NCBI GenBank assembly: GCA_037447605.1
Contig: CM074814.1
Span: 1,612,001 to 1,676,000 of the forward strand
DNA from: Zygnema circumcarinatum SAG 698-1b
Taxonomy: Eukaryota > Plantae > Zygnematophyceae
Length of the DNA stretch: 64,000 nucleotides
Direction: 5' to 3'
The notes beneath the pieces are model-generated. The model was not told the DNA's origin, did not search any database, and saw nothing but the letters and a program-made list of their open reading frames with translations. Positions 3,444 to 34,200 of the stretch are shown piece after piece. The position numbers and the translations under genes are program-made. Every line of letters begins with the position of its first letter. The first letter of the stretch is position 1.

Positions 3444-3460
3444 GGGAATTTAAAAAAAAA

Positions 3461-3961: not shown

Positions 3962-4293
3962 CACAGATCGGACCATTAGACAAACCAGTCGACTGGTTGG
4001 CAACCAGTGGTTGCGGACCGAAACAACCATTCGACTGGTTTGGAACCAGTGGATGCCACTGGTTGGCAACCAGTCGAATGGTTGGCAACCAGTGCCGCCG
4101 GATCGAAACAACCATTCGACTGGTTGCGAACCAGTGGCGCAGGACTGAAACAACCTTCGACTGGTTCGGAACCAGTGATCCAATGGTTGGCAACCATTGA
4201 ATTTCTGAAATTATGCCTTTTTGCAAAAATGGGTCGTTTGTGTTTTTTGGTTGGTTGCCAACCGTTGACAACTAGTGTAACAAGCCTGATGCG

Positions 4294-5696: not shown

Positions 5697-5890
5697 CAAT
5701 GGTTGCAGTTATTGGCAATGGTTGGCTGGGAAGCCAACCAATGGTTGCAACCATAGGCAATGATTGGGTGGGGCGGGAATCAATGGTCCAATGGTTGCAG
5801 TTATTGGCAATGGTTGGCTGTGTAGCCAGCCAATGGTTGCAACCATTGGCAATGATTGGGTAGTGGCGGGAATCAACGGTCCAATCGTTG
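5697..5890 (+). repeat. 92-bp palindromic satellite, block 2 (continuation after element A)
   Basis: Same unit; period 92 at 5732/5824. Confidence 0.9.
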
Positions 5891-5970
5891 CTCCCCCTCC
5901 CCCTCCCCCTCCCCCCATTCCATTTAAATTGTATTTTTATTTCCTCTCTTTTGTCTCTGTGGGGCGGCAG

Positions 5971-6511
5971 GTTATTCTCCTGGACGAGATGCTGAAGCTC
6001 CTGTCACGTCGCTCCTCTGGTAGCAAGTCCCGCCTGCTTGCCAATGTTGGTTCCAGCATCCCCGGGGGGGAGGGGGGGAATCAACTTAAAGATAAAACTA
6101 AATTTTAATTAATCTTATTCCTTGTGATTCATTAAACCTAAAACAAAAAAAGTTAGTGTTCTACCTTAGTGTTGGAGCACTCTCTCTCTCCTTTTTTCAC
6201 CGATGCTCATTAGAACATATTAAGGTTCTTTCAACTCCTCCCCTTCATTCCTTCATCCGCGGATACCCCTCCCTCTCCTAAACTATTAAAATCTGAGTTT
6301 ACTCTGGTTTCTTTTTTGTTCATTCCAGGATTTTGCATTAGCTGAGAAATTAGGGTTTGGGTTGGATTGGTTTGGGGTTCAGGACCGGTTCCCTCCCGAG
6401 CAGGCCATCGAAGAGGACTTTCTTCTTCAGAGTTCCCGAAGGCAGACCTGCTACCCAAGGCTCTCTAGCATAGGCAGGAATAGGGGCTCAAGGGAGACGG
6501 AGCTCACTGAG
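5971..6511 (+). pseudogene. Two orphan exon-like segments of an unidentified gene
   Basis: 5971-6045 (75 nt, VILLDEMLKLLSRRSSGSKSRLLAN) and 6383-6511 (129 nt, DRFPPEQAIEEDFLLQSSRRQTCYPRLSS...ETELTE). Both are CAG/GT-bounded, phase 0 and open. No start or stop exon seen. Confidence 0.4.
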
Positions 6512-6529
6512 GTTTAGGCAGTTTTTTCT

Positions 6530-7650
6530 TTGTTTTTTTCTTTTCTTTTTTTAAGAATTTAGAGGGGGACGAGAAGATGGGTAGTTCGGAGGTTCGCATT
6601 GTTAGCAAGCGTCAATGTAAATAGCATTTTCTTCCTTCTTTTTTAAGGCCCTGTGGACGTGAACAAAAAAAAAATAAAAAAATGTGACTTCAAGCATTTG
6701 CCAGCCGATGTTATAGTCGTTGGCAATGGTTGGGTGGGGCGGGAATCAATGGTCCAATGGTTGCAATCATTCGCAATGGTTGGGTGGGGCGGAAATTAAT
6801 GGTCCAATGGTTGCAGCTAATGGCAATGGTTGGCTAGGTAGCCAGAATATGGTTGCAACCATTGGCAACGGTTCGGTGAGGCGGGAATCAATGGTCCAAT
6901 GATTGCAGTCATTGGCAATGGTTGTCTGGGAAGCCAGCCACTGGTTGCAACCATTGGCAATGGTTGGGAGGAGCGGGAATCAATTGTCCAATGGTTGCAG
7001 TTATTGGCAATGGTTGGGTGGGAAGCCAGCCAATGGTTGCAACCATTGACAATGGTTGCAACCATTGACAATGGTTGCAACCATTGACAATGGTTGGGTG
7101 GAGCGGGAATCGATGGTCCAATGGTTGCAATTATTGGCAATGGTTGGCTGGGAAGCTAGCCAATGGTTGTAACCATCGGCAATGATTGGGTGGGGCGGGA
7201 ATCAATGGTCCAATGGTTGGCTGGGAAGCCATTCAATGGTTGCAACCATTGGCAATGATTGGGTGCGGCGGAAATCAATGGTCCAATGATTGCATTTATT
7301 GGCAATGGTTGGATGGGAAGCTAGCCAATGGTTGCAACCGTTGGCAATGGTTGGGTATAGCGGGAATCAATGGTTCAATGGTTGCAGTTATTGGCAATGG
7401 TTGGGTGGACAAGCAATATATCGCATTTCTGCAAACCGGGATATATGGATCGATACAATATCGCGATACATCCAATACTTCCATACCGCTTTATATCGTT
7501 TACGTTCCAGAATCGCCCCCTCCGCCAAGCTGCCTCCTAATCGAAGAATTTACATGAACGTGGCGCCTATTCATTGGTCGCGGTGCCAAAACTCTGTATC
7601 TCTACCCCCGCCTCCGTGCCCTTACCGCGTCCCGCACTACGGTGGTGCAC
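6530..7650 (+). repeat. Composite block (unique head + satellite block 3 + ~240-bp unique module), paralogous to 17022-17830
   Basis: TTTAAGAATTTAGAGGGGGACGAGAAG...GGCCCTGTGG and GCAATATATCGCATTT...CGCGTCCCGCAC occur in the same order at both places, with scattered substitutions and indels. Confidence 0.88.
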
Positions 7651-8497
7651 CCATTGGCAATGGTTGGGTGGAGCGGGAATCAATGGTTCACTGGTCGCAG
7701 TTATTGGCAATGGTTGGCTGGAAAGCCAGCCAATGGTTGCAACCATTGGCAATGGTTCGGTGGGGCGGGAATCAATGGTCCAATGGTTGCAGTCATTGGC
7801 AGAGGTTGGGTGGGGCGGAAATCAATGGCCCAATGGTTGCAGTTATTGGCAATGATTGGCTGTTAAGCCAGCCAATGGTTTCAACCATTGAAAATGATTG
7901 GGTGGGGCGGAAATCGTTGGTCCTATGGTTGCATTCATTGGCAATTGTTGGCTAGGTAGCCAGCCAATGGTTGCAACCATTGGGAATGGTTCGGTGGGGC
8001 TGGAATCCATGGTCCAATGGTTGCAGTCATTGGCAATGGTTGGCTGGGAATCCAGCCAATGGTTGCAACCGTTTACAATGATTGGGTGGGGCGGAAATGA
8101 ATGGTCCAGTGGTTGCACTCATTGGCAATGGTTGCCTGGGTAGCCAGCCAATGGTTTCAACCATTGAAATGATTGGGTGGGGCGAGAATCAATGGTCCAA
8201 TGGTTTCAGTCATTGGCAATGGTTGGCTTGGAAGCCAGCCAATGGTTGCAACCTTTGACAATGATTGGGTGGGGCGGAAATCGTTGGTCCTATGGTTGCA
8301 TTCATTGGCAATTGTTGGCTAGGTAGCCAGCCAATGGTTGCAACCATTGGGAATGGTTCGGTGGGGCTGGAATCCATGGTCCAATGGTCGCAGTCATTGG
8401 CAATGGTTGGCTGGGTAGCCAGCCAATGGTTGCAACCATTGACAATGATTGGGTGGGGCGGAAATCAGTGGTCCAATGGTTGCAGTTATTGGCAATG
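7651..8497 (+). repeat. 92-bp palindromic satellite, block 4
   Basis: About 9 units of the same consensus. Confidence 0.9.
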
Positions 8498-8737
8498 GCC
8501 CCTCTCCCTCACCCTCTTCATACACTCTCTCTCCCGCCTCTCCCTCACCCTCTTCATACACTCTCTCTCCCCCCTCTCCCTCTGCCATGCTCCCCTCTCC
8601 TCTTCTCTCTTATCTTCCTCTTTCCCTCACATCCTTTCCAAACACTTTTCACCCTTTTCTTTCTCAATTTTTCGTCCAACCTTTTGACATTATTTTTTTC
8701 ATACATTTTCAAATTTTCCACATTTTTCCACCTGCAG

Positions 8738-10369
8738 GGAAAACAGTGCTGGTGAACGCGCTCGCCTGCCAACTCCCCCGCCAAAAAAATGTTTCCCTTT
8801 TTGGCGAATTTCGCGCAAATGGAGTTTTCCGGGAGGGGGCGATTGTCAGGTGGAGGGAGGAGCCTACGGAACCCTGTTTTCCCCTTACCAACTTAAACCC
8901 TAAATCTTAAGCCTTCAATCTTAAAACCCTACGACTCTTAAACCCTAAGCCCTAGACCCAAAAACCCTAAAAACTTAGAATCTTAAAACCGTAAATCCTA
9001 AACCCGGAACCTTAATCCCCTAAACCCAAAATGAACCGCAAACCCTAGACTCTAAATTCTTAAAATGTTAACCCTAAAATCCACGATGCAGAGAATTTTG
9101 ATTTGAAAACCTCATTCAAGTTTGTATACCTTTACTTAAAATCTTTAAAACCCCTAAAAACCTAATATCCTTACTAAAAAAATTAACCCTAAATTCATTT
9201 TTTTAAATATCTGGGTTGCAGACATGCCTACGTACGTCAGGAAGACATTTTTTTTTCTCAGCTGACCGTCCGAGAGACTCTCCTTCTGGCTGCAAAGCTG
9301 CAGCTACCCGCAAAACTTTCTGAGGAGGAAAAAATTTTACATGTGGACCGACTGATTCATCAACTTGGACTTGTACGAACACTCGGTTTTTTCTTAACAC
9401 CCAAAAATACCTTTATTCATGCAAAAACCTAAACCTTCAACCCTAAATCCTAAAACCTAAGCCCTAAACCCTCAACCCTAAATCTTAAACCCTAAACCCT
9501 AAACCTTCAACCCTAAATCCTAAACCCTAAGCCCTAAATCCTCAACCCTAACCTCTAAACCCTAAACCCTAAACCCTAAACCCTGAACCTTAAACCTTAA
9601 ACCATAAACCTTAAACCATAAACCTTAAACCCTAAACCCTAAACCTTCAACCCTAAACCCTAAACCTTAAACTCTAAACCCTAAATCTTAAACCGTAAAC
9701 CCTAAACCTTCAACCCTAAATCCTAAAACCTAAGCCCTGAACCCTCAACCCTAAATCTTAAACCCTAAACCCTAAACCTTCAACCCTAAATCCTAAACCC
9801 TTTCCGCCCCTGTTTTGTGTTCCACCCTTTTCGCCCTTTTTCCACTTCCACACATAAACCCCTAAAAGCCAAATGAAACTCCAGAACGCTCACCCTAAAC
9901 CCTAAATCTGAACCTTAAACCCTAAAGTCCTAAACCCTGAACCCTAACTGTTAAACCTTCAACCCTGAAACGCGAAACCCTGAGTCCTACCTCCAGATGC
10001 TGAACCCTAAACCAAATCCCTAATCCTTAAACCCTGCACCCTAAAACCCTAAACCCAACACCTTTCGAGGCAGCCAACTACATCCTAACATTAGAAATCC
10101 CTAAAACCCTGAATACTCTTAAAAACTCTATCAACTGAAAAACCCTCAAAACGCAATTTGCACCCCAATGAAGTCGTTTTAACCCTTCTTTGACCCCCCC
10201 CCCCCCCCCTTTTTTTTCCCCCCTTTTTTCCCCCTCAACTTCTTGGGCAGACCACGCGTGACAAGGCCACCAACAATGTCCGGGCAGCCATAAACTTTTT
10301 TTCGGCGCTTCTTTCGGCTCAATTTTTTGGCGAATGGGATTCGGCCAAGACCGCATGGGCCTTCTGCAG
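8738..10369 (+). pseudogene. ABCG7: ABCG7 (WBC7)-like half-transporter relic, three exons
   Basis: Exon 8738-8849: GKTVLVNALACQLP...FRANG (end of Walker A). Exon 9222-9372: AYVRQEDIFFSQLTVRETLLLAAKLQLP...HQLGL (Q-loop). Exon 10251-10369: TTRDKATNNVRA...[frameshift]FGSIFWRMGFGQDRMGLLQ (membrane domain). The signature/Walker B exons are missing, and the introns are degenerate CCCTAAA repeats. Confidence 0.8.
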
Positions 10370-10389
10370 GTGCTCTTCTTCATTAAGCT

Positions 10390-10780
10390 TTTTTAGGACT
10401 TCAGGGTTTCAGGGTTTTAGGGTTTCATGGTTTGAGAGTTCTACAATTTTAGAGTTTTACGGTTTTAGAGTTTTAGAGTTTTAGGGTTTCAGGATTCTAG
10501 AGTTTTAGAGTTTTAGGGTTTTTTCAGTTTCAGGGTTTTAGGGTTTTAGAGTTTTAGGGTTTAGGGTTTTAGGGTTTTGGGGTTTTAGGGTTTTGAGGTT
10601 TTAGGGTTTCAGGGTTTTAGGGTTTCATGGTTTGAGAGTTCTACAGTTTTAGGGTTTTAGGGTTTTTTGAGTTTCAGGGTTTTAGGGTTTAAGAGTTTCT
10701 GGGTTTAAGGGTTTTAGAGTTTTAGGGTTTAGGATATTAGGGTTTTGGGGTTTTAGGGTTTCAGGGTTTTAGGGTTTCAC
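10390..10780 (+). repeat. Telomere-like block, G-rich strand on +, mostly 8-mer TTTTAGGG/TTTTAGAG/TTTCAGGG
   Basis: Direct reading, e.g. GGGTTTTAGGGTTTTAGAGTTTTAGGG. Confidence 0.9.
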
Positions 10781-10784
10781 TACA

Positions 10785-13700
10785 ACCCTACAACCCTAAA
10801 ATCCTCACTCTGCAACCATCCGAACTCGACGCCCTACATCCTAAACCTTCCAACTGTACACAATGAAACATAAACCCTGAATGCAGACCCTAAACCCTGC
10901 ACCCTTACCCTAAACCAACCCCTAAACCCTAAACCCTAACTCCTGCACCCTAAACCCTAACTCCTGCACCCTAAACCCTAAACCCTCAACCCTGCACCCT
11001 AAACCCTGCACCCTAAACCCTAAACCCTAAACCCTAAACCCTAAACCCTGCACCCTAAACACTAAACCCTGCACCCTTAACCCTAAACCCTGCACCCCTT
11101 ACCCTAAACCATGCACCCTAAACCCTAAATTCTGCACCCCAAACCTTAAACCCTCAACCCTGCACCCTAAACCCTAAACCCTGCACCCTAAACCCTAAAC
11201 CCTGCACCCTAAACCCTCAACCCTGCACCCTAAACCCTAAACCCTGTACCCTAAACCCTGCACCCCAAACCCTAAACCCTGCACCCTAAACCATAAACCC
11301 TAAACCCTGCACCCTAAACCCTAAACCCTGTACCCTAAACCCTTAACCCTGCACCCTAAACCCTAAACCCTGCACCCTAAACCCTGCACCCCTTACCCTA
11401 AACCATGCACCCTAAACCCTAAATTCTGCACCCCAAACCTTAAACCCTCAACCCTGCACCTTAAACCCTAAACCCTGCATCCTAAACCCTAAACCCTGCA
11501 CCCTAAACCCTAAATTCTGCACCCCAAACCTTAAACCCTCAACACTGGGCCCTAAACCCAAAACCCTGCACCCTAAACCCTAAACCCTCAACCCTGCACC
11601 CTAAACCCTAAACCCTGCACACTAAACCCTGCACCCTAAACCCTAAACCCTGTACCCTAAACCCTGCACCCCAAACCCTAAACCCTGCACCGTAAACCAT
11701 AAACCCTAAACCCTGCACCCTAAACCCTAAACCCTGCACCCTAAACCCTAAACCCTGTACCCTTAACCCTGCACCCCAAACCCTAAACCCTACACCCTAA
11801 ACCCTAAGCCCTCAACCCGGCACCCTAAACCCTAAACCCTGTACCCTAAACCCTGCACCCCAAACCCTAAACCCTGCACCCTAAACCATAAACCCTAAAC
11901 CCTGCACCCTAAAACCTAAACCCTGCACTCTGCCCCTCNTAAACCCTAAACCCTAAACCCTGCACCCTAAACCCTAAACCCTGCACCCTAAACCCTAAAC
12001 CCTAAACCCTAAACCCTGCACCCTAAACCCTAAACCCTGCACCCTAAACCCTAAACCCTGCACCCTAAACCCTAAATTCTGCTGCCCCCACCTTAAACCC
12101 TCAACCCTGGGCCCTAAACCCTAAACCCTGCACCCTGCACCCTGCACCCTAAACCCTAAACCCTGCAGCCTAAACCCTAAACCCTCAACCCTGCACCCTT
12201 AACCCTAAACCCTTCAACCTAAACCCTAAACCCTGCACCCTGCACCCTAAACCCTAAACCCTAAACCCTAAACCCTGCACCCTAAACCCTAAACCCTAAA
12301 CCCTAAACCCTAAACCCTAAACCCTGCTCCCTAAACCCTAAACCCTGCACCCTGCACCTTAAACCCTAAACTGCACTCTAAACCCTAAACCCCTGCACAC
12401 TAAAACCCTAAACCTCTGCACCCTAAACCCTAAACCCTAAACCCTAACCTCTAAACTCCTGCACTCCTAAACTCCTAAACTCCTCAACCCTGCACTCCTA
12501 ACTCCTAAACCTGCACACTCCTGCACCCTAAACCCTGCACCCTGCACCCTAAACCCTAAACCCTGCACACTAAACCCTAAACCCTGCACCCTAAACCCTT
12601 AACCCTGCACTCTAAACCCTAAACCCTGCACTCTAAACCCTAAACCCTGCACCCTAAACCCTAAACCCTGCACCCTTAACCCTGCACCCCAAACCCTAAA
12701 CCCTGCACCCTAAACCCTAAACCCTGCACCATAAACCCTAAACCCTGCACCCTAAACCCTAAACCCTAAACCCTGCACCCTAAACCCTAAACCCTGCACT
12801 CTAAACCCTACACCCTGCACTCTAAACCCTAAACCCTGCACCCTTAACCCTAAACCCTGCACCCTAAACCCTAAATTATGCACCCCAAACCTTAAACCCT
12901 CAACCCTGCACCCTAAACCCTAAACCCTCCACCCTAAACCCGAAACCCTGCACCCTAAACCCTAAATTCTGCACCCTCCACCCTAAACCCTCAACCCTGG
13001 GCCCTAAATCCTAAACCCTGCACCCTGCACCCTAAAACCCTCAACCCTGCACCCCTGCACCCTAAACCCTAAACCCTGCACCCTAAACCCTAAACCACCC
13101 TAAACCCTAAACCCTAAACCCTAAACCCTAAACCCTAAACCCTGCACCCTAAACCCTAAACCCTAAACCCTAAACCCTGCACCCTAAACCCTAAACCCTA
13201 AACCCTGCACCCTAAAACCTAAACCCTGCACCCTAAACCCTAAACCCTAAACCCTGCACCCTAAACCCTAAACCCTAAACCCTACAACCCTAAACCCTGC
13301 TCCCTAAACCCTTAACCCTGCACTCTAAACCCTAAACCCTCCCTAACCCTGCACCCCTAACCCTAAACCCTGCACCCTAAACCCTAAACCCTAAACCCTG
13401 CACCCTAAACCCTCAACCCTGCACCCTAAACCCTAAACCCTGCACCCTAAACCCTGCACCCTGCACCCTAAACCCTAAACCCTGCACCCTAAACCCTAAA
13501 CCCTGCACCCTTAAACCCTAAACCCTGCACCCCCTAAACCCTGCAAAACCCTAAACCCTGCACCCTAAACCCTAAACCCTGCACCCCAAACCTTAAACCC
13601 TCAACCCTGGGCCCTAAACCCTAAACCCTGCACCCTAAACCCTAAACCCTAAACCCTAAACCCTGCACCCTAAACCCTAAACCCTAAACCCTAAACCCTT

Positions 13701-16700
13701 CACCCTAAACCCTAAACCCTGCACCCTGCACCCTAAACCCTAAACCCTGCACACTAAACCCTGCACACTAAACCCTGCACCCTAAACCCTGCACCCTGCA
13801 CCCTAAACCCGAAACCCTGCTCCCTAAACCCTAAACCCTGCCCCCTAAACCCTAAACCCTGCTCCCTAAACCCTAAACCCTGCACCCTAAACCCTAAACC
13901 CTGCACCCTAAACCCTAAACCCTGCACTCTAAACCCTAAACCCTGCACCCTAAACCCTAAACCCTGCACCCTAAACCCTGCACCCTCAACCCTAAACCCT
14001 CAACCCTGCACCCTAAATTCTGCACCCCAAACCTTAAACCCTCAACCCTGCACCCTAAACCCTGCACCCTGTACCCTAAACCCTAAATTCTGAACCCCAA
14101 ACCTTAAACCCTCAACCCTGGGCCCTAAACCCTAAACCCTGCACCCCAAACCCTAAACCCTGCACCCTAAACCCTAAACCCTGCACCCTAAACCCTAAAC
14201 CCTGCACCCTAAACCCTAAACCCTAAACCCTAAACCCTAAACCCTAAACCCTAAACCCTAAACCCTGCACCCTAAACCCTAAACCCACTCTAAACCCTAA
14301 ACCCTGCACCCCCTAAACCCTGCACCCTAAACCCTAAACCCTGCACCCTAAACCCTAAACCCTGCACCCTAAACCCTAAACCCTGCACCCTAAACCCTAA
14401 ACCCTAAACCCTGCACCCTGCACCCTAAACCCTCATCCCTGCACCCTAAACCCTAAACCCTGCACCCCAAACCTTAAACCCTCAACCCTGCACCCTAAAC
14501 CCTAAACCCTTCACCCTAAACCCGAAACCCTGCACCCTAAACCCTAAATTCTGCACCCCAAACCTTAAACCCTCAACCCTGGGCCCTAAACCCTAAACCC
14601 TGCACCCTGCACCCTAAACCCTAAACCCTGCAGCCTAAACCCTAAACCCTCAACCCTGCACCCTTAACCCTAAACCCTTCAACCTAAAACCCTAAAACTC
14701 CTGCACCCTGCACCCTAAAACTCCTAAACCCTGCACACTCAAACCCTCGGCCACTCAAAACCCTGTGACCCTAAAACTCCTGCACCTGCACCCCAAACCC
14801 GAAACCCTGCTCCCTAAACCCTAAACCCTGCTCCCTAAACCCTAAACCCTGCTCCCTACCCTAAACCCTGCACCCTAAACCCTAAACCCTGCACTAAACC
14901 CTAAACCCTAAACCCTAAACCCTGCACCCTAAACCCTAAACCCTGCACCCTAAACCCTAAACCCTGCACCCTAAACCCTAAACCCTAAACCCTAAACCCT
15001 AAACCCTAAACCCTAAACTGCACCCCAAACCTTAAACCCTCAACCCTGCACCCTAAACCCTAAACCCTGTACCCCCTAACCCTGAACCCTGTAACCCTAA
15101 ACCCTAACCCTGCACCCTAAACCCTAAACCCTGCACCCTAAACCCTAAACCCTGCACCCTAAACCCTAAACCCTGCACCCTAAACCCTAAACCCTGCACC
15201 CTAAACCCTAAACCCTGCACCCTAAACCCTAAACCCTGCACCCTAAACCCTAATCCCTGCACCCTAAACCCTCAACCCTGCACCCTAAATCCTAAACCCT
15301 GTACCCTAAACCCTGCACCCCATACCCTAAACCCTGCACCCAAAACCCTAAACCCTCCACTCTAAACCCTAAACAATGCACCCTAAACCCTTAACCCACA
15401 ACCCTGCACCCTAAACCCTAAACCCTGCGCCCTAAACCCTGAACCCTGCACCCTAAACCCTAAACCCTGCACCCTTAACCCTAAACCCTGCACCCTAAAC
15501 CCTAATCCCTGCACCCTAAACCCTCAACCCTGCACCCTAAATCCTAAACCCTGTACCCTAAACCCTGCACCCCATACCTCTAAACCCTGCACCCAAAACC
15601 CTAAACCCTCCACTCTAAACCCTAAACAATGCACCCTAAACCCTAAACCCTCAACCCTCAACCCTGCACCCTAAACCCTAAACCCTAAACCCTGCACCCT
15701 GCACCCTAAACCCTGCACCCTAAACCCTAAACCCTGCACCCTAAACCCTAAACCCTGCACCCTAAACCCTGCACCCTAAACCCTAAACCCTGCACCCGAA
15801 ACCCTCAACCCGAACCCTAAACCCTGCACCCTGCACCCTTAACCCTGCATCCTAAACCCTGCACCCGAAACCCTTCACCCTACTCCCTAAACCCTAAACC
15901 CTGCACCCTAAACCCTAAACCCTGCACCCTAAACCCTAAACCCTCAACCCTCAACCCTGCACCCTAAACCCTGCACCCTAAACCCTGCACCCTAAACCCT
16001 AAACCCTGCACCCTAAACCCTAAACCCTAAACTCCACTCTAAAACCCTAAACAATGCACCCTAAACCCTAAACCCTCAACCCTCAACCCTCAACCCTGCA
16101 CCCTAAACCCTAAACCCTGCACCCTAAACCCTAAACCTGCACCCTAAACCCTAAACCCTGCACCCTAAACCCTAAAAACCTAAACCCTAAACCCTGCACC
16201 CTAAACCCTGCACCCTGCACCCTAAACCCTGCACCCTGCACCCTAAACCCTGCACCCTAAACCCTAAACCCTAAACCCTGCTAAACCCTAAACCCTGCAC
16301 CCTAAACCCTAAACCCTAAACCCTAAACCCTAAACCCTAAACCCTAAACCCTAAACCCTAAACCCTAAACCCTAAACCCTGCACCCTAAACCCTAAACCC
16401 TAAACCCTAAACCCTGCACCCTAAACCCTAAACCCTAAACCCTGCACCCTAAACCCTAAACCCTGCACCTCTAAACCCTAAACCCTGCACCCTAAACCCT
16501 AAACCCTGCACCCTAAACCCTAAACCCTGCACCCTAAACCCTAAACCCTAAACCCTAAACCCTAAACCCTAAACCCTGCACCCTAAACCCTAAACCCTAA
16601 ACCCTAAACCCTAAACCCTAAACCCTAAACCCTGCACCCTAAACCCTAAACCCTGCACCCTAAACCCTAAACCCTGCACCCTAAACCCTAAACCCTGCAC

Positions 16701-17010
16701 CCTAAACCCTGCACCCTAAACCCTAAACCCTGCACCCTAAACCCTAAACCCTGCACCCTAAACCCTAAACCCTGCACCCTAAACCCTAAACCCTGCACCC
16801 TAAACCCTAAACCCTAAACCCTGCACCCTAAACCCTAAACCCTGCACCCTAAACCCTAAACCCTGCACCCTAAACTTTAAGCCCTGCACCCTAAGCCCTC
16901 AACCCTTAACCCTCAACCCGCACCCTAAACCCTAAACCCTGCACCCTAAACCCCGCACCCTAAACCCTCAACCCTTAACCCTGCACCCTAAACCTTAAAC
17001 CCTACATCTT
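10785..17010 (-). repeat. ~6.2-kb interstitial telomeric array: CCCTAAA interleaved with CCCTGCA and minor CCCTCAA/CCCTGTA
   Basis: Continuous 7-mer phase with a dominant 21-bp unit CCCTAAA-CCCTAAA-CCCTGCA. One N at 11939. Confidence 0.97.
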
Positions 17011-17021
17011 GCATCCTGCAT

Positions 17022-17830
17022 CTGTTTTTTTCTTTTCTTTTTTTAAGAATTTAGAGGGGGACGAGAAGGTGAGTAGTTCGGAGGTCCGCATTGGCAGCAA
17101 GCGTCAATGTAAATAGCATTTTTTTTCCTTCTTTTTTAAGGCCCTGTGGTAAGTTTTTTCTGCCCAGCAGCATAGGGAGGCTTATTCTTTGCCGCGTGTG
17201 TGTGTCGGAGGAATTTTGAAGTGACCAAAAAAATAAAAAAAGTTGTGGCTTTCAGCATTTTCCAGCCGATGTTGCAGTTGTTGGCAATGGTTGGGTGGGG
17301 AGCCAGCCAATGGTTGCAACCATTGGCAATGATTGGGTGGGGCGGGAATCAATGGTCCAATGGTTGCAGTTATTGGCAATGGTTGAAGCCAGCCAATGGT
17401 TGCAACTATTTGCAATGGTTCAGTGTGGCGGGAATCAATGGTCCAACGGTTGCAGTCATTGGCAGTGGTTGGCTTGGTTGCAACCATTGGCAATGGTTGG
17501 GTGGGGCGGGAATCAATGGTCTAATGGTTGCAGTTATTGGCAATGGTTGGCTCGGGAGCCAGCCAATGGTTGCAACCATTGGCAATGGTTGGGTGGGCAA
17601 GCAATATATCGCATTTTTGCAAGCCGAGATATATCGAGCGATGGAGTATCGCGATACATCCAATACTTCCATAGCCCTTTATATCTGTGAAGTTCCAGAA
17701 TCGCCCCCTCCGCCAAGCTGCCTCAAAATCGAAGAATTTACATTAACGTGGCGCCTACTCGTTGGTCGCGGTTCGAAAACTCTCTGTCTCTTCCCCCGCC
17801 TCCGTGCGCTTACCGCGTCCCGCACCACGT
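17022..17830 (+). repeat. Second copy of the composite block (includes satellite block 5, 17270-17600)
   Basis: Colinear with 6530-7650; has ~60 extra nt near 17150-17220. Confidence 0.88.
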
Positions 17831-18510
17831 TGTGCCCGCCATCGCTGGACGCCCTTTGATTGGCTGCGCGTGACTTCGATCCTCGTCTTCGTGGCGCGTC
17901 TAGCGACTGTCACGTCACGCCCCTGAGTTCGAGCACGTACTGTATTGATTTTTGCAGTCGGCCCGCAGGTGCGAGTTCGTCTGTGTGCGCCGCGTGGCGA
18001 GTCTGGCGACTGTGGTCCCATCGAGGCAAAATCTTCTTACGCGTCGGCCGTCGATGGCCGTTGGAGGATTCCACACCGTCCGATTAGCCATTAAGAAAAG
18101 CACTGCTGATGTCAGCCATCCGCTCGTCGTGGGACCACCGCGTAGCTGTGACGCCACGTGGAGCCCTCGCTAGACCTGCCGCCTGCTCTGCCAGGTGGCG
18201 CTTGTCGGGACCTGTGATAAGGTCGTCGCACTACTGTATACGGACGGCCCGGACCGCCCGTTGACCAAATTGGAAGATACGTGGCGTTGTTTCAGTCGTC
18301 CGATCTCAGACATTGCCGTTCGGGCCTGCACGCGCTCCCCCACCGACCACAAAGCGCCGGCGCGCAGAATGAAAGTGCCTGCGCATCGGCCAATCACAGG
18401 CCGCCATTGGATCGGTGCGCTTTGGCGGTTCGGAATGCGCACCGCCACGTGGCGCGCTTCCTCGCCAAAAACGCGGTCCCACCAGTCGAGTGAATGCTTA
18501 CCGACATTTG

Positions 18511-19134: not shown

Positions 19135-19466
19135 TCTTCGCCGCGAGTACAGTACCAGGTCGTACGGCGCCTCACGTCACCTCGTGTCACGTCACGCGCA
19201 CATTACGCGACCATTCCCCCACGGCGGTGGCGCCACCTGTTGGTCCGTACACTCTTCCCCAGATTTCAGGATAGGGTAGGCGCACGGCCCGCCGTTTTGA
19301 GCCGCATATCTCCTCTCCGGGCAGCTCGTGGCCAACCTTGAGCTGCCCGGAGGGCGCTCGCCCAATGCGGACGCTTGCTCTGCGCACACGGAAGCAGAAA
19401 ACATTTCAGGGCTGCCCGGGGCCCACCCCAAGGCCTGGGCCATCATTTCTCCCTCCCTCACCTCTC

Positions 19467-19518
<52 letters not shown>

Positions 19519-19540
19519 GCAGCCAGGCACGGCCATGGCT
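19135..19540 (+). repeat. Left arm of long imperfect inverted repeat (promoter-like module + (CT)n 5'UTR)
   Basis: CATTCCCCCACGGCGGTGGCGCCACCTGT, CTTGAGCTGCCCGG...CGCTCGCCCAAT, GGCTGCCCGGGGCCC.CCCCAAGGCCT and the CT tract all reappear reverse-complemented, in order, at 22950-23380. Confidence 0.88.
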
Positions 19541-20689
19541 GCCGCGGCCTCTTTCTCGTTCTCCCTCCGCGAGCGCGTGCGCGCGCTGGCGCTGAGCCAG
19601 CTGCAGGCGCTGCTCTCGCACTTACTGGCGGCTCTGCGCCGCCGCGCTGGGCGCCGACCGCGACGCCTTCGCGCAGACGGCCCTCGACTACATCGAGGCG
19701 TACGGCGTGCTCGACCTCCCTCCCCTACCGCCGCCTTCTGCCCAGCATGCCGCCTCTCTCGCAGGGGCCGAGGAGGAGGAGGAGGAGGAGGAGGGGGGCG
19801 AGTGCGCCGAGAGGGAGGGGGAAAGAGGCAGCGTCGTCAAGCGCCTCCGCATGGCGTCGCCTGCTGCGCCCATCCCCTTCTCTCCCGCTCCCTTCTTCCG
19901 CCTGCGAGCCTCCACCTCGGAAGAAGCCGACGCAGACGCAGCCAAGTTGAAGACTGCGGAGGAGATCGGAGCTGCGGAGGCAAGTTTTAGGAATGTTGGT
20001 GTAGGTTTTGCTTTTGGATACGGCAGGGAGACCGAGAGTGTTTGTGATGTTCCTCGCTCTCCCATCCCTAGAGTGGGAGTGAGGGAGAGGAAAGTAAGGT
20101 TTATGATGGAGGGAAAGGTGAAGGTGCCAGGAAAGGGGGACAGTGACAACGAATCCGGGGAGGAAATGGAAGTAGAGGGAGTGAGAGGGACGAAGAGACA
20201 AAGGAGGGGGGGTGAAGACAATGAGAAGGAATATTCAATGCTCGGTAAGGGAGTGGGAGGAAAACGGGCGAGGGAGGGGGAGGAGGAGGCCGACATCGCC
20301 CTTTTGGGAGAGCGCGGAAAGGTGAGGGAAGATCATTCTCAAACCAGAAAAAAAAGAATTTATTTGTTTGCTGTATCTTGTTTCGTGTTCTTCTTCTGTC
20401 CTTCTTGTTTATCCTGTCCTGTTTATTTTCTCTGTTGTTTGTTCTATTTTTTTCCTTTTTTTTTTTTTGTCTTTTCTTTTTTTTTTTTTATATCCGTTTT
20501 TCTGTTTGGTTGTCCCGTGCAGTATTCCAATTACGTGTACGACTGCAGGGCGAAGGGTCGCAAAGAGACGATGAAGAAAAGGGGCTCTCTCCCTCGCGAC
20601 CCCTCCGCCCGTCCGAGGAGGGCCTTTCCCACTCGCTCTGTGGAAACCCACATCGGACAAATACAGGGTCCGGGAGGAGGTCCGGCTGA
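19535..20689 (+). pseudogene. Orphan gene, acidic/basic low-complexity protein, one apparent +1 frameshift near 19622
   Basis: GCCATGG start after a CT tract. MAAAASFSFSLRERVRALALSQLQALLSH continues as YWRLCAAALGADRDAFAQTALDYIEAYGVLDLP if one T is removed. T-rich intron 20322-20548 (GTGAG...CAG). The last-exon frame is ambiguous (stop 20689 or 20753). Confidence 0.5.
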
Positions 20690-21394
20690 ACCCCTCATGG
20701 GAAAGTACTTGCGTTTCTTCCGGTCTGTAACCGGGGGGGCGATAGGCATGTGATGTGCGTAAAGGCCACGAGTTTGGGAAGGAAGGGGGAGGCGGAGCGA
20801 GTGGTGGAGGAAGCCGCTGCCGCGGTTGGTTGGCCGGAGGGCCCCCCCGGCCACAGCGGCCGGCGGAGACAGTTAGAGGCACTTGTTGGATTTTTGCATT
20901 CTTTTTATTATTCGGTGTCTATGTCAGTTGCAGTTCAGTCTCAATTGCAGTTCCAGTTCCAGTTTCAGTGCCAGTTTCAGTTCCAGTTCAGTTTGGTGAA
21001 TACTGAGTGCGATTTTTTTTCTGCAACTTTATCGTGATTGCAGTTCCATCGCTACTTAGATGTAAGGTGCAGTTCAAGAGTGTAACTTAGCATGGAACTG
21101 GCTGACCAGTGACCAGCCTTTCAGTGAGATGGTAGTTTTGCAGCGTCATCCTCAACGAGGACAAGTCTGTTTTTTTTTTTTTTTTCATAAGATTGGAGGA
21201 GTTTGGAAACCCAAGAAGTGTTTGCACAAACAAATGAACTCTTTGTGTAAAACCATCAATAAAGCACGGATTTCCATGAACTGATGAGGACGACCTTGGC
21301 TGTTGCTTTAGCATGCACCAGGTTTCTCTGTCTTTTCCTAAGCTCAAATCCAGCCGTCCAATAAAATCGAACCAATAGGAACGTGCCATGTCAG

Positions 21395-21580
21395 ACTAGC
21401 CAAGGGCCAAGGGTTGAACGGAACATGGGTTGGACCAACCATTGGAATGGTCACGATTTGCAAATCAATAAATCCCGATCCAGCCAACCATTGGATGCAA
21501 TGGTTGCAGCCATTGGCAATGCTTGGCTGGCTAGCAAGCCAATGGTTGCAACCATTGGCAATGGTTGGCTGGGAAGCAAG
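21395..21580 (+). repeat. Satellite header + short satellite block 6
   Basis: GGGCCAAGGGTTGAACGGAACATGGGTTGGACCAACCATTGGAATGG...CCCGATCCAGCCAACCATTGGAT; the same header begins the block at 23734. Confidence 0.85.
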
Positions 21581-21952
21581 GGAGAGAGGGAGCGAGGGAA
21601 AGGGGGAGTGGGAGAGTGAAGGAGGGCGAGATAGAGGGAGAAAGGGGGATTCTGCACGCAACAGCAGCATGAACACACCAAAATAGTGCTGCAAAAAACA
21701 GGCATAGAGAGAGTCATACAATGAAAAAAGACCCTTTCTTCATAAAAAAGGACAGCCTTTAAGGCAAAAAAATTACAGCTGGCAATTTCTGACACACTTA
21801 TTCCGCTACTTCCTTTTGAAACTAAAACGGAAGTTGCCAGAGATGAAATTTCAATAAATACATGCCAAATTTTGTCCAAAAAAATTATTTACTCAGAAAA
21901 TGAGTAAAAATCATTTCTAATTATCTTGAACCTTCAGTAGTTTGATTTGGAC

Positions 21953-22946
21953 TCAAGGACACAAAGGGCACTTGAAGCCCCGGCCATCCTCAGATGGCAA
22001 AAACACTCCTCTCGGATCCGTCCACATCGGATGGAGAGGCTTCTGCTTGACTCTCAGCGATTCGTCCAAGCGGGCAAGTGCTTGGCGCAGAAGAGCCGAT
22101 TCACGCGCCAAGGCCGCATTGCTCGCCTCCATATCCCACCCGCTGTTCAGCCTTTCATGGATAGTAACCAAATCTTGCAGGTCGTCGCCTCCCTGCTTCC
22201 TTTTCCAATTCGAGAAATTGTGCAAATTTCCTCCCATTTGCATTTTCCCCTCCCCAGGACCACTCCGGCGGCTGTATTGCGGCTCACCGAATGCCTTTTG
22301 GGTCGCACTGAACACTGACGACGAGGCGCGGAACACAGGCCGCCGCCTGGCACTGAAGAGCGGCTCAGGCTCATCATAGAGCGGCGCCTTCAAGCTCGGA
22401 TAATCCAAGGACTTTGCATGATACTCCTTCGAGTTGCGGACAATGGGATACGTCTTCACGGTCCGGGGGGGCTGTATTGCCAACAAGGGATCAGAAAACG
22501 CGAAATCAGTCAAGCGTATGCATACAAACCTTCAAAACTGGCCCATACAAAAGCAAGCAGCATCAACGCAAAAAGCACTTTCCGATGCTAACAGCCCTAG
22601 AAACAAAAAGCTTGAAGTGTTTGGAAGGTGCAGCAGGTCATACCTGGCGAGGATTCGCTAACTCCTTTGCGAACTCCTCGTGCAACCAGTCCACAGCGAA
22701 AAGGTAGGCCTTTCCGAGTTCCGTGGCGCCCGCAAGCAGCCACGCCCAAGCGCTGTATCCAAGCACCGCCATGGCAGCCAGCGCATGCCAGGAGACGCTG
22801 CAAAAGACGACAAAAAGGTCTTCCAGGTGCGGGCGGGCGGCTGCAGCAGCCTTCAGCCCGCCGCCCACCGCCGCTGCGAGCAGCTGCATCAAGTGCAGCC
22901 AGAAAGCGCAGAAAGCTGCCGCCCTGGCAGCACCTGGCACGGCCAT
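21953..22946 (-). CDS. Orphan two-exon gene, ~273 aa, hydrophobic N-terminal segments, C-terminal helical stretch ending CPLCP
   Basis: Exon 1 22946-22644 (101 codons, donor GTATGA) joins in phase 0 to exon 2 22471-21953 (acceptor ...TTTTCTGATCCCTTGTTGGCAATACAG). The ATG follows a CT-rich leader on the minus strand. Confidence 0.6.
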
Positions 22947-22949
22947 GGA

Positions 22950-23380
22950 TCAGCAGGAGGAGAGAGAGAGAGAGAGGGAGCGAGAGAAGAGAGAGAGGGA
23001 GAGTGAGAGAGAGCGAGAGAGCGAGAGAGAGCGGGTGGTCGGTGAGGGAGGGAGGAAGACATGACAGCCCGGACCGCAGGGCGAGGCCTTGGGGAGGGCC
23101 CCGGGCAGCCGAAACGTAATACAGGCTGCCCTATACCCGACGCAAGCGTCCGCGATTGGGCGAGCGTCGGCCGGGCAGCTCAAGTCTGGCAGCGAGCTGC
23201 CCGCAAGGGAAAGGTGTGGCCCAAAATGGCGGGCCGCGCTCCTACCTCATCTGCCCTGTGGATAGGACTGTACGGACGGACAGGTGGCGCCACCGCCGTG
23301 GGGGAATGCTGCCGTACGGTGCGCGCGACGTGACGGGACGCGCCGTAGGGGGGCTGCGCCTGATCGGAATCGCGGCGACG
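22950..23380 (-). repeat. Right arm of long imperfect inverted repeat
   Basis: Reverse complement of 19135-19540, e.g. ACAGGTGGCGCCACCGCCGTGGGGGAATG at 23280-23308. Confidence 0.88.
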
Positions 23381-23398
23381 GAGGACCAGAAAGAATTT

Positions 23399-23730
23399 CA
23401 GCTGCCCGACCGCCGCTCGCCCAATCGCGGACGACTGATTCGCTGGGAGGGCAGAATAAACCATTTGAATGCTGCCCGGCGCCAAACTTGAGCTGCCCGG
23501 CCGACGCTCGCCCAATCGCGGACCTTTGCTTCACGGTTGGGGCAGCCAAAACCATTTCCGATCTGCCCGAATCCAGACTTCAGCTGCCCGGCCGACGCAC
23601 GCCCAATCGCGGACCTTTGATTCACGGTTGTGGTAGCCAAAACCATTTCCTATCTGCCCGTGGCCAGACATCAGCTGCCCGGCCGACGCTCACCCAATCG
23701 CGGACGTCCGCGAAGGGTAGCCGAAAACAT
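23399..23730 (+). repeat. 91-bp tandem repeat, ~3.7 units, CCAAT-containing
   Basis: AGCTGCCCGGCCGACGCTCGCCCAATCGCGGAC core; units start at 23399, 23490, 23581 and 23672. The same core lies inside both inverted arms. Confidence 0.9.
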
Positions 23731-23733
23731 TCC

Positions 23734-24450
23734 GGGCCAAGGGCTGGACGGACCATGGGTTGGATCAACCATTGGAATGGTCGCGATTGGCAAGCCGTTG
23801 GTTCCCGATCCAGCCAACCATTGGATCCAATCGTTGGGCGGAGCGGGAAGCAATTGTCCAATGGTTGCAGCCATTGGCAATGGTTGGCTATATAGCCAGC
23901 CAATGGTTGCAACCATTGGAAACAATGGTTGGTTGGGCCGGGAATGAATGGTCCAATGGTTGCAGTTATTGGCAATGGTTGGATGGGAAGCTAGCCAATG
24001 GTTGCAGCCATGGACAATGATTGGGTGGGGCGGGAATCAATGGTCCAATGGTTGCAGTTACTTGCGATGGTTGGCTGGAAAGCCAGCCAATGGTTGCAAG
24101 CATTGACAATGGTTGGCTGGAAAGCCAGCCAATGGTTGCAACCATTGACAATGATTGGGTGGGGCGGGTATCAATGGTCCAACGGTTGCAACCATTGGCA
24201 ATGATTGGGTGGGGCGGGAATCAATGGTTGAATGGTGCAGTTATTGGCAATGGTTGGCTGGGTGGTCAGCCAATGGTTGCAACCATTGGTAACGATTGGG
24301 TGGGGCGGGAATCAATGGACCAATGGTTGCAGTTATTGGCAATGGTTGGCTGGGAAGCCAGCCAATGGTTGCAACCATTCGGCAATGGTTCGGTGGGGCG
24401 GGAATCAATGGACCAATGGTTGCAGTCATTGGCAATGGTTGGCTGGGAAG
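23734..24450 (+). repeat. Satellite header + 92-bp palindromic satellite, block 7
   Basis: Same consensus; ends ~350 bp upstream of the FAH ATG. Confidence 0.9.
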
Positions 24451-24798
24451 CACTGGAATAACTTTCCGTTATTAAACCTTTTTTGTTTATTTTAAAATCT
24501 TCCCCGCGTGAAAAGGGTTGTGTCGATCCTAAAAAGGGGTGGATTTATCAGTTCCCAAAGGAAAACACGCAAGGGACCCGTTGGCGCAATATCAAATATA
24601 TTTGATACGAACCGAGAAAACCGAATGGCGCGCGAATGGTACAATGGTCAATATCGAGTACGTCTCGATTCGAACAGAAATTGGAGGTGCCGCAGCGCGC
24701 GCGAGGGCGAGGGAGCGGGGGAGGGAGAGGGTGAGGGAGAGGACGACGGAGGGAGGGAGGGAGCGACAGGCCTTCGGAGGTGCGAGGCCGTGGCAGCC

Positions 24799-30042
<5,244 letters not shown>

Positions 30043-30063: not shown

Positions 30064-30094
<31 letters not shown>

Positions 30095-30104
30095 NNNNNN
30101 NNNN
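30095..30104. other. Assembly gap (10 N) after poly-G
   Basis: N run. Confidence 0.99.
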
Positions 30105-30163
30105 GGCAAGGACAGTGGGGAGGGAGGGGAGGGGAGGGGAGGCAGCGGTTCTATGTTCAAAAT

Positions 30164-30580: not shown

Positions 30581-30920
30581 ACCAATTGTAAAAAGTAGCT
30601 ATTCACATCCTCCTCCTTCTGTGATGACGTAGTTGATCCTGCATCCCAAATCACACCGAGGGATAAAGACCCTAAACTCTATAAACATCACCAAAACCTT
30701 GATGGCAGGATGCAGCCTACAGTGCTCCTACTACAATGAAAATGGCTGCCTTAATCTCACCACAGAGCAATCGCTGCCACCATAATGGATAAAGAGATGA
30801 AGTCCAAAACATTCCACAGCTGAGCGAAGTGTGACACAACAGAACCATACACACGATAGCAAGTGATCAATTCTCTCAGCTTCCTCTTCCTCCCCCCCCC
30901 CCCCCCCCCCCCCCCCCCCC

Positions 30921-30930
30921 NNNNNNNNNN
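30921..30930. other. Assembly gap (10 N) within poly-C
   Basis: N run. Confidence 0.99.
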
Positions 30931-31279
30931 CCCCCCCCCCCCCCCCCCCTTGAGATCAATGCCACATCATTCCTTCTGCAAAATCTCGGTTTCCCGCCAT
31001 TCCAAGACGTTGTCTTGCACTCCATCTTTCCCTCTCGCTCTCTCCTCTCTCCCTCCCTCTCTCTCGCTGCCCCACCCGCCGTCACTCTCTCTCGCTCTCT
31101 TGTTTTTCCCGACAGCCCTCTCCACCTCTCCCTCTCCCTTTCTCTTCCTCTCCCTCGCCCTCTCCAGTCCCTCTACCTCTCACTTCCGCCCTTTCCCTTT
31201 GTCTTTGCCCTTCCCCCACTTTCTTCATAGCCGCGCCGTCCGTCTCCTTCTGCGGGCCTTGTTTGGGGGGGAGGCAGCC

Positions 31280-34200
31280 ATGGCGGAGAGGGAGGCCCGC
31301 GCCCTGGAGGGCTTGCGCGTAGCGGCAGCAGCAGCCGCGCGGCCCATCCATGGCCGCGACGTTGCTAAGTTCTGCGCACTCTTGCTGTCAGGGCTGAGGC
31401 GGGAGGAGGAGGTGGAGGAGGAGGAAGAGGAGCAGGAGAGAAAGGGGGAGGAGGAAGAGGAGGAGGAGGAGGAGGAGGAGGAAGAGGAGGAGGAGGAGGA
31501 GGAGGTGGTGGAGGAGGAGGAGGAGGGGGAGGAGGTGGAGGGGGTCATGGCGGATCGACTAATTCATATGGGCATACTTGATTCGCTGGAGGCTTGTATG
31601 CGATTCGGGTATGCACAGGGATGCTCTTTCTTTCCTTTTTCTCTCATGGAGCTCTCCTTAAATTGAGCGCCCCGAACACTCTGTTTCTTTCAGGGACTTC
31701 ACCCCTTCAGAAATTTGTAGTTGAATTCATCACTGGGATTTTAGCTTTTTTTGGTGTGAAAATCCTCAAATTTCTTATTTACAAACGCCATATGTAGCCT
31801 TTCAAATGACCATGCTTACTTGTAGCGGTGGAGTCGGAACAAATGTAAAATGTTCTTTTGTTGGAGGACATTGCCACCTTCTGGTTCCTGTATGTGTCTT
31901 TCTTTGATAATTGACTCTTTGAGGAATCAAAAGTCCGTTCATTGAATCCTTTAAAACACGTGGCATTTGGTTTTGTCAAAGTGAGCCGTAATGGTGATAG
32001 ACCCTTACTTTTTGAAGTGCATTGCTGTGCAGGCACGAGTCGCTTGCTATCTGCCGCGTGGCAGAGTTGGCAGGAGCTTTAGCTCTGTCATCGTACAGTG
32101 CAAACTGCCACGTGGCATCACACAATGGCATCGTAAGGGCTCTTGTAAATCTCGTGAAGAGTGATGGAGGAGTGGAGGTGATGGAGGTGGCAGCCCTTGC
32201 AATGGGACATTTGGCAACTTCTGCGAACGGCTGCAGGGCTCTCCAGGAAGCTGGGAGTGTTGCCATCCTCTTGTAGGTGCCTTAGATGTGGCTTTCCATC
32301 TCCACCATCACTCGGCATCTGTGGCAAGTTTGAGTTGGTGAGTAGATTCTGACAGAGGAGGGTTCTTGGATTTGTAATGAAATGAGTAGGGCCGATGTGT
32401 TCCTTCAACCATGCTCCCTTTTTTCGGTTGAGAGAAGTGAACATACATTATGTGACGTTCTCTCCGTTTCTGCCGTTCCCCTTTTTTTGCAGAGAAGCGT
32501 TTGTAAAGATTGCACGATCGACTTTTGTTGGCACTCCCCCCCTGGGTGTTTGGGAAGAAGTAGACCAGGGGAATAGCTGTGGTGGCTTCGGTAGTTTCCC
32601 GGCACACCTAATGCTGCAGGAGGGGAAGCAAAATCGGCCGAAAACTGAATGTGAACAGAGGTTGCGGAAGAAACAGTTCATTGACAATCAGAGCACGAAC
32701 CCCGCTGTTTGTGCAGAAAGCACACCCGTGAAGTTTGTCTCAACAGGATGCAACAGTTTAAAGGAAGCTGCTGACAAATGTGGTGGTGTCCTGTGCGGTA
32801 AGATTTGCAGCAAAACCGGAAGTGATTGTCATGCGAAAGGTGTCTTTATGGAGGTTCACAGGTGCATGGAAGCCCTTGTGTCGACATTGCACGCAGTCAT
32901 GCTCGGACCCTGTCCAGTCCTCTCTGCTCCAATAAATAGAAAAACACTCTTAGCAGCAGTTTATGGTTTGCAAGTCGTGTACGGCGTTCAACGAAAGTCA
33001 GACGTGGTCGACAAATTTCGAGTAGCGATTGGACAGTTAATCGTGCTGTTGGGTATGCTAAGCAACATAGGAGAAGAGAGGGATGGGATGGAGAGGGAAG
33101 CTTTTCAGACTTGTGAGTTTGGGACCTTCCTTGCGGGTCATCAGGGTGGTCTGGAGAATTTCTTTAAGGAGTATTGGGAAAGGAGACCCCTTCTGGTGAG
33201 AAGAAGGCAAGCTTCCCATGAAGCAGTCTCCAAAACGGAACCCAACACAGAATGCAGCAAGTTAGTCCATTGTGTTCAGTCTCCCATATCCGAGATTCAT
33301 AACGGGAACGAGTCACAGAATGAGAAGCCGGAAAGTGTTTCGCTCTTACAGAGCATCAGGGAGCTTCAGAGTGATGAAGCTGTTTTCTCAGATTTGCTGC
33401 CAAAATGTATAGCCTGCCCTACCGCACCATCGTATGATTTCGATCCTGCTGCTGTGATCAAAGCAATGGGAGACAAGCTAGGAGGCCCTATGGTTTCTGG
33501 ACAGGATTTGTCCCTAGTAAGAACCAATGCTTCGGCTCCTGGTCAGCAGGAAAACTTTTTCTCCGAGCACAGTCTCAGGCAGACAAGAAATGGCGTGGTT
33601 TCCGCTGAAGACTGCATAGAAGCTTACAGGGAGGGATACTCTATTGCCCTCAGAGGATTGACATATCGATTGGGTAAAATAGCTGAGTTGTCTGACAGCA
33701 TAGCAGAGTTTTTAGGACAACCTTCTGCGGGAGCCAACCTTTATTTGACCCCTGGCAATAGCCAAGGGTTGGCCTGTCATTACGATGATCATTGCGTCCT
33801 AGTCTGTCAGATGGCGGGCTGCAAAAAGTGGACTGTTTATCGAGCAGAGGTCAAAATGCCTTCACTTTATGAGACTCGGCATACGCCACGTGCTTCAAAA
33901 AGTGATGTTGAGGGGGAGTATGTTCTTGAGCCAGGGGATGTACTCTACATACCTAGAGGGTACCCCCATGAAGCAAGCGCCATAGGATTGAGGGGTGATG
34001 GAGAGGCAGATGTTGGAAATGGCATGGAAGGTGGAGGGGCAGAGAGTGAATTTCCTGAGGAGGGTGAAGCTTTTGGAGATGTTTTCGAGAGGGGGTTTGC
34101 GGGAGGTTCAGACTGTGGTGTTACTTTGAGACCATGCAGCAACAAAGGAGATTATTCGCTCCACGTGACCTTCGGACTTGAGGTTGAGCCTTTGTTTCAG

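Follow-up and report, generated by a model that had tools for sequence, protein, structure and literature searches.

The stretch examined here is a 64-kb window (64,000 nucleotides, the whole of the DNA that was analysed) of contig CM074814.1 from the streptophyte alga Zygnema circumcarinatum SAG 698-1b. Within it we describe a 4.2-kb unit that is bounded by two inverted arms and holds two genes reading towards each other, one on the plus strand behind the left arm and one on the minus strand behind the right arm. The unit is embedded in satellite and telomere-type repeats and is followed on its right by the gene for fumarylacetoacetase (FAH). An earlier sequence-only reading of the same DNA had described two orphan genes transcribed out of inverted promoter arms, and had likened the whole to a mobile cassette of the MuDR/Pack-MULE type.

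The inverted arms and the genes they face

The left arm (19138 to ~19520, plus strand) and the right arm (23378 to ~22955, minus strand) are colinear reverse complements by both MAFFT and global alignment, and a repeat search found three colinear inverted blocks of 72-81% identity between them. When the CT/GA microsatellite is excluded, the arms are 79.3% identical over 299 aligned columns, with a Kimura two-parameter distance (K2P) of 0.24 and 12 indel events, and the Smith-Waterman score of the arm cores is 220, as opposed to 19.7 ± 2.7 in dinucleotide shuffles (z = 75). Shuffle tests gave no significant DNA similarity either downstream of the two ATGs (z = 0.3) or beyond the outer arm edges (z = -1.4), and a colinear homology past the ATG that looked suggestive by eye is not significant by the first of these values. 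Both the colinearity of the arms and the ending of their similarity at the start codons, as claimed in the sequence-only reading, are thereby confirmed. What the two genes have in common is a bounded piece of promoter and leader, and the coding sequences downstream of it are unrelated.

No third arm copy was found in the window and no further long inverted repeat within 24.5-64 kb, and the 21-mer around the palindrome described below occurs nowhere else in the window besides the arms. Searches of the arm motifs against metagenome and viral contig collections gave no match, a result that is uninformative for an alga. Rfam and tRNA scans of the locus returned nothing relevant, the sole match being a sub-threshold microRNA in low-complexity sequence.

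Read from the outside inwards, the left arm consists of an ACGT-rich outer part, a palindrome block, a dyad, a CCAAT block, a GC block and a CT-rich leader, and the right arm is colinear with it when read on the minus strand. The motifs listed previously could all be located in both arms: ACGT cores at 19174 and 19189 on the left and at 23114 and 23328 on the right, a 12-bp palindrome at 19226 and at 23283-23294, lying within a perfectly shared block of 29 nt, and CCAAT at 19362 and 23155, the latter in a module that spans 23124-23206. The left leader is CT-rich over 19446-19516, including (CT)23.5 at 19470-19516, and the right leader carries an imperfect (GA)n at 22960-23031. An ERSE-like CCAAT-N9-CCACG module is absent from the arms. 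Far to the right, a (GTCACG)12 hexamer array at 42763-42834 has a unit that resembles the GTCACG(T) cores of the outer arm parts.

Mismatches are not spread evenly over the arms but clustered: identity in 20-column intervals has a variance of 8.6, as against 3.7 after permutation (P = 0.0008), and the longest perfect run measures 29 nt (P = 0.008). This run is the palindrome block (19212-19240 in left-arm coordinates); the other perfect islands are the two dyad halves (19318-19328 and 19337-19350, in a module at 19317-19350), the CCAAT block (19355-19378) and the GC block (19410-19436). In each arm the dyad can fold into a hairpin (ΔG -20 and -13 kcal/mol, z = -5.3 and -3.2). Conservation is highest 75-300 nt inside the arms, and their outer ~70 nt are just 65-72% identical. 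Clustered perfect islands appear here as expected of retained cis-elements, in the manner of paralogous footprinting, and the two copies, 21% diverged, would provide a built-in footprint of candidate elements in these four islands.

The right gene starts at ATG 22946 on the minus strand. Its exon 1 (22644-22946) comprises 101 codons; the encoded peptide is hydrophobic in stretches around residues 9-31 and 43-74, and the codon-position GC of 0.71/0.50/0.72 resembles that of FAH exon 1. A 172-nt phase 0 intron (22472-22643, GT..AG), proposed from sequence only, would lead to exon 2 (21953-22471, coding 22471-21956, with 172 codons and the stop), for a total product of 273 aa over two exons. Exon 2 is predicted to be largely disordered with two helices, and its stop-free run of 192 codons was reached in 3 of 1000 composition-matched shuffles.

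An inward-pointing ATG had been placed at the end of each arm, and both are present, at 19535 (+) and 22946 (-), but the left one is not in the frame of the long ORF (open reading frame) behind it. ATG 19535 stands one base out of frame with the ORF at 19596-20753. Codon-position GC fits the ATG frame over 19535-19640 (plus strand), that is the start and first ~35 codons, where the second position is GC-poor, and it fits the long-ORF frame from 19641; the start context is GCCATGGC, the usual one in this genome. Because the codon-position GC switches frame near 19640, the left gene is, on this measure, a single coding sequence broken at that point by an assembly indel or a true frameshift. The break sits in a CGC/GCC-rich tract near 19630-19645. 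The main open frame then runs over 19641-20321 (plus strand, in the frame of 19596-20753), with its first in-frame ATG at 19851, and encodes an acidic, low-complexity sequence predicted to be mostly disordered. A putative intron at 20322-20522 (plus strand, GT..AG) is 201 nt long, a multiple of 3, T-rich and without in-frame stops, and is followed by the last coding segment with the stop (20523-20753, plus strand). The product would have ~340 aa and is acidic and disordered by prediction. None of 1000 composition-matched shuffles reached the length of the stop-free run of the left ORF (385 codons).

For both ORFs the proposed frames are preferred by codon-position GC and by the codon log-likelihood ratio (LLR); their codon-position pattern matches that of FAH exon 1, and on these grounds both open frames look like real coding sequence. 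In the protein searches, exons and frame segments were used as separate queries. Pfam gave no family above cut-off in the 23 ORFs of ~70 aa or more between 17.8 and 23.1 kb, both genes included. Right exon 2 and the left ORF had no relative in a word-indexed search of ~5.8 billion proteins, and right exon 2 had no match in a full HMMER scan of 1.84 billion cluster representatives. The ESM Atlas held no usable match for either protein (recognition scores 1464 and 1074), and PDB sequence searches of both genes gave no match; right exon 1, searched in Pfam, PDB, the window and an exact-sequence look-up, had none in these. Within the window, tblastn found no paralogue of either ORF and no cross-match between the two, and the comparison score of the left with the right protein fell within that of shuffles. 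The description of two ORFs without mutual similarity or recognisable domain thus holds, and the profile searches of the proteins that the sequence-only reading had suggested were negative, in Pfam as in HMMER for right exon 2. AlphaFold2 (AF2) single-sequence models of the two proteins are of low confidence and mostly disordered (pLDDT, predicted local distance difference test, 56 and 45).

A GCAGCCATGGC-type start context is common to the left ATG at 19535, the FAH ATG at 24799 and a JmjC/NO66-like gene (~31280), and CT- or GA-rich leaders likewise precede FAH and the JmjC/NO66-like gene; to judge by these occurrences of the start context, translation in this genome may begin preferentially in it. 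Such contexts were noted at 19518-19543, 24790-24806 and 31272-31286, and they are palindromic if the second codon is GCT or GCG, with ATG on both strands. A 13-mer, GGCACGGCCATGG, spans both ATGs of the unit in direct (+/+) orientation, flipped relative to the arms (1 of 2000 shuffles), and on extension 21 of 23 aligned columns match. Its right copy codes for the first residues of the right protein. Its left copy closes the leader of the left gene; CCATGG in this copy is a palindrome, and the left ATG is taken from the opposite strand. Inverted repeats of 7 bp, which fold into a hairpin (ΔG -14.1, z = -3.3), enclose the left copy. The genome's usual palindromic start context accounts for some of the match, and the flipped 13-mer might have come from a hairpin-templated inversion of a short segment at the inner end of the duplicated piece.

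A local duplication mosaic in a satellite field

Directly outside the right arm lies a 91-bp tandem repeat with 3.4 copies (23397-23705, plus strand), each unit of which corresponds to the arm-internal dyad/CCAAT module. The units are inverted relative to the CCAAT module of the right arm and direct relative to that of the left arm; locally the module is present in six copies, and in the window it was seen only in the arms and in this array. Further out, still between the right arm and FAH, follow a segment that we call X (23734-23836, plus strand) and a block of a 92-bp satellite (23834-24451). A direct copy of 23734-23937, comprising X' and one unit of the 92-bp satellite (21404-21580, plus strand), is found inside the unit, in the spacer between the convergent genes, and X and X' are 85% identical over 103 nt (K2P 0.16). 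FAH (Pfam FAA_hydrolase_N) starts at 24799 on the plus strand and is divergent from the right gene, so that the intergenic region of 1.85 kb is made up of the right arm, the CCAAT repeats, X, the satellite and the GA-rich leader of FAH.

Comparable relations extend to the left flank. Blocks of the 92-bp satellite, which is of a CCAATGG type, occur at 3272-8498 and 17200-17597 in addition to 23834-24451, and a 6.1-kb (CCCTAAA)n array with a CCCTGCA variant was found by Tandem Repeats Finder (TRF) at 10887-17004, 2 kb from the locus. It is preceded by, and stands head-to-head with, (TTTTAGGG)48 at 10391-10777 on the plus strand. Degenerate C-strand telomere-type repeats were also observed at 9424-9983, and the interstitial complex as a whole spans 9424-17004. 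The presence of the 92-bp satellite in direct orientation on both sides of the array does not fit a simple symmetric end-to-end fusion well. Two further segments, U (7412-7644, 233 bp) and U' (17600-17833), are 88% identical and lie one on each side of the telomere-type array; each follows the 92-bp satellite, and their homology breaks off precisely at the next junction of U with satellite. The locus is in this sense a mosaic of local duplicates, set in a satellite field.

Some further features of the window may be recorded. ARAGORN reported two tRNA-Ala(GGC)-like and one undetermined tRNA at 5395-5577 and 7008-7093, inside 42/85-bp and 92-bp satellites, and these calls are probably false positives arising from palindromic satellite units. 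A near-perfect (CT)526 microsatellite of 1,051 bp (28403-29453) begins within a few bases of the end of an FAH exon, at the start of the next intron, the exon being marked by an FAA_hydrolase match at 28276-28400. Two gaps of 10 N are located in long homopolymers, one in poly-G (30095-30104, region 30072-30146) and one in poly-C (30921-30930, region 30879-30949). The two regions, separated by 0.7 kb and lying a short way upstream of the JmjC/NO66-like gene, look like an inverted pair and probably reflect an assembly problem at homopolymers.

Origin of the arms

Of the sequence-only interpretation, the duplicated module of promoter and 5' untranslated region (5'UTR) in front of orphan genes is supported by our analysis, and the mobile cassette of MuDR/Pack-MULE type is not. 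The explanation that we favour, and to which we would give about an even chance of being right, is that the locus goes back to an old partial duplication, local and inverted, of a promoter and 5' leader in a repeat field prone to rearrangement. The arms would be two old paralogous copies of one ~0.4-kb gene front end, each carrying upstream ACGT and palindrome elements, the dyad and CCAAT module, and a CT-rich 5' leader that reaches to ~15-20 nt before the start codon. The right side would probably be the native promoter region, because the right arm, the 91-bp CCAAT repeats and the FAH leader fill the 1.85-kb divergent region shared with FAH, and the left arm would be the inverted copy, which lies 3.4 kb off and fronts an open frame of unrelated sequence. 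The second copy would have been made by local inverted partial duplication, not by transposition, and template switching at small palindromes is one possible mechanism. We tried two simpler routes and rejected both. A simple fold-back (hairpin-primed) duplication is at odds with arms that lie 3.4 kb apart and with an ATG-spanning 13-mer that is direct, not inverted, and a tandem duplication followed by inversion would make the two genes paralogues, for which no homology is seen between them.

Under this explanation each arm would serve as promoter and 5'UTR of its inward-facing lineage-specific gene, and the two transcripts would converge on a 1.2-kb, AT-richer spacer. The arms look like gene fronts of this genome in their CT/GA-rich leaders and GCAGCCATGGC-type start context, they contain conserved islands, and both probably still act as promoters. 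If both are active, nature would here offer a clean case of a single regulatory front end shared by two young, unrelated genes; the locus would also yield promoter elements that can be tested in a streptophyte alga and show, on a small scale, how expression is acquired by lineage-specific genes.

Several points weigh against this explanation. That a breakpoint should land within some 20-40 nt of a start codon and ahead of a second coding-like ORF is a coincidence for which selection or ORF extension has to be invoked. Mutational heterogeneity or alignment gaps could account for part of the clustering of conservation. The count of arm copies covers 64 kb, and a dispersed or mobile family could exist elsewhere in the genome. 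The databases may lack this species and its close relatives, in which case 'orphan' would mean a gene without relatives outside a poorly sampled clade; the status is a relative one, because even the neighbouring JmjC/NO66-like gene has a best protein match of merely 38% identity, and all the relatives returned for it are land plants at 38% or less. Lastly, the 9-mer at the ends of the unit can be read, ambiguously and weakly, as an 8/9 target-site duplication (TSD) of the length found in Mutator-like elements (MULEs).

This last point belongs to the view that the unit is an ancient, now immobile MULE-like or foldback transposon of the Pack-MULE type, with terminal inverted repeats (TIRs) of ~0.38 kb that carry inward promoters and with two non-transposase cargo genes, which we hold to be unlikely. 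The 4.2-kb unit is indeed bounded by inverted arms, it lies within a satellite block that also holds nested transposons, and a 9-bp TSD, which defines Mu elements (PMC10401008), is matched in length by the outermost 9-mers (19138-19146 and 23370-23378), identical at 8/9 as a direct repeat. These 9-mers are, however, near-palindromic and fit an inverted repeat at 9/9, and a match of 8/9 or better occurs in 8% of position pairs drawn at random. No other candidate fits the TIR ends: we found no 8-11-bp direct repeat with 0-1 mismatch abutting matching ends, although a true TSD could have decayed at an arm divergence of 21%. On the same estimate of divergence the arms cannot be those of a recently active element. 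Where a transposon family would show a multi-copy TIR with best-conserved ends, the window holds two arm copies whose outer ~70 nt are their least conserved part, with the conserved islands placed inward, and such termini are the opposite of what would be expected of transposase-binding ends.

The contents of the unit speak in the same direction. The absence of a transposase, already stated in the sequence-only reading, was corroborated with Pfam, which detected no Mutator-type domain (MURA; MULE/DBD_Tnp_Mut) and no transposase, reverse transcriptase (RT), RNase H or recombinase domain in the 23 ORFs in and around the unit; a DIRS-like retroelement, which we also considered, is rejected for want of RT, RNase H and recombinase domains in the internal ORFs. 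The missing transposase excludes MuDR-like autonomy only, because non-autonomous elements need none. No Pack-MULE cargo derived from host genes was recognised, either in the window or in the 1.8-5.8 billion proteins searched. The sole internal copy of other DNA is X' with its one satellite unit, which comes from the adjacent flank. The interior of the cassette thus copies the outside flank while the outside flank copies an arm module, a reciprocity that agrees with local rearrangement in several steps and is hard to square with a discrete insertion. The reading as a transposon was the source of the initial excitement about this locus, and our results lend it no support: we saw no convincing TSD, neither the unit nor its flanks contain a transposase, the 64 kb have no third arm copy, and the outer ends are the least conserved.

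A related view, which strikes us as quite unlikely, is that the arm is a portable module of promoter, 5' leader and start context, possibly once borne by a MULE or foldback element, that was copied in front of open sequence and so seeded two lineage-specific genes. The palindromic start context (CCATGG within GCAGCC..GGCTGC) would then supply an ATG in either orientation, and if the view were true the locus would record a traceable birth of orphan genes by promoter transplantation. We give a smaller chance still to the idea that the arms are two members of a dispersed, non-transposon family of promoters and 5'UTRs that precedes several unrelated genes and owes its spread or its homogeneity to ectopic gene conversion or recurrent partial duplication. 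Such a family would agree with homology that is limited to promoter and leader and stops at the ATGs, with conserved internal islands that suggest retained function, and with the local amplification of the CCAAT module itself; yet the window has no third member, the CCAAT-N9-CCACG module is not in the arms, and the metagenome and viral contigs, uninformative as they are for an alga, do not contain the arm motifs.

An old inverted duplication of a whole gene, in which the coding regions diverged beyond recognition and the promoters were conserved, is very improbable. Both proteins are fast-evolving, disordered and lineage-specific, and the two genes have their first two residues and the 13-mer over the start codons in common, but with arms still 79% identical homologous coding DNA should be visible, and the comparisons of DNA downstream of the ATGs (z = 0.3) and of the proteins remain within shuffles; the exon/intron layouts and lengths are also unlike. 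Barely credible is an assembly artefact, in which a mis-join or collapsed repeat in this satellite- and telomere-rich region made the inverted layout: despite short N runs in the window (11939, 30095-30104 and 30921-30930), the odd interstitial telomere array and the possible indel error in the left gene, there is no N run between 17000 and 30000, and 21% divergence with 12 indels between the arms is not that of a collapsed or duplicated read.

Comparison with known systems

The TIRs of maize MuDR contain the promoters of mudrA and mudrB. The Zygnema locus resembles MuDR in being a unit of ~4-5 kb with long inverted arms and two genes that run convergently from the arm ends. It differs in having no MURA/MURB-like protein or any transposase domain, in arms that are 21% diverged and least conserved at their termini, in lacking a clean 9-bp TSD and a family of copies in the window, and in the local sequence that its flanks and interior have in common. 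With Pack-MULEs it shares inverted arms around non-transposase coding sequence, and in both, transcription may start in the arms; unlike theirs, its cargo has no detectable parent gene or homologue, and the sole captured piece is its own outside flank (X and one satellite unit).

CCAAT boxes are enriched in mammalian bidirectional promoters, and the right-arm CCAAT module together with the oppositely oriented 91-bp units between the right gene and FAH recalls CCAAT-rich divergent promoters. At this locus, however, the modules are tandemly amplified and a 0.6-kb satellite block stands before FAH; the likeness is one of sequence, and the enrichment is known from mammals.

A further parallel is of another kind. 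Partial (5'-end) gene duplication can give rise to chimeric or novel genes whose promoter and 5'UTR are borrowed, as described in a review (PMC3449122), and an example is given for Drosophila (PMC1463047). The locus is like such cases in having a sharply bounded copy of regulatory and leader sequence in front of an unrelated ORF, probably made locally in a duplication-prone region; it is unlike them in that the copy is inverted and the genes are convergent, that it stops at the start codon and includes no coding exons, and that it is old and yet retains perfect islands. The locus itself reveals no new mechanism, partial duplications that lend promoters and leaders being already known. It appears to belong with the partial 5' duplications through which other ORFs acquire regulatory regions (PMC3449122, PMC1463047).

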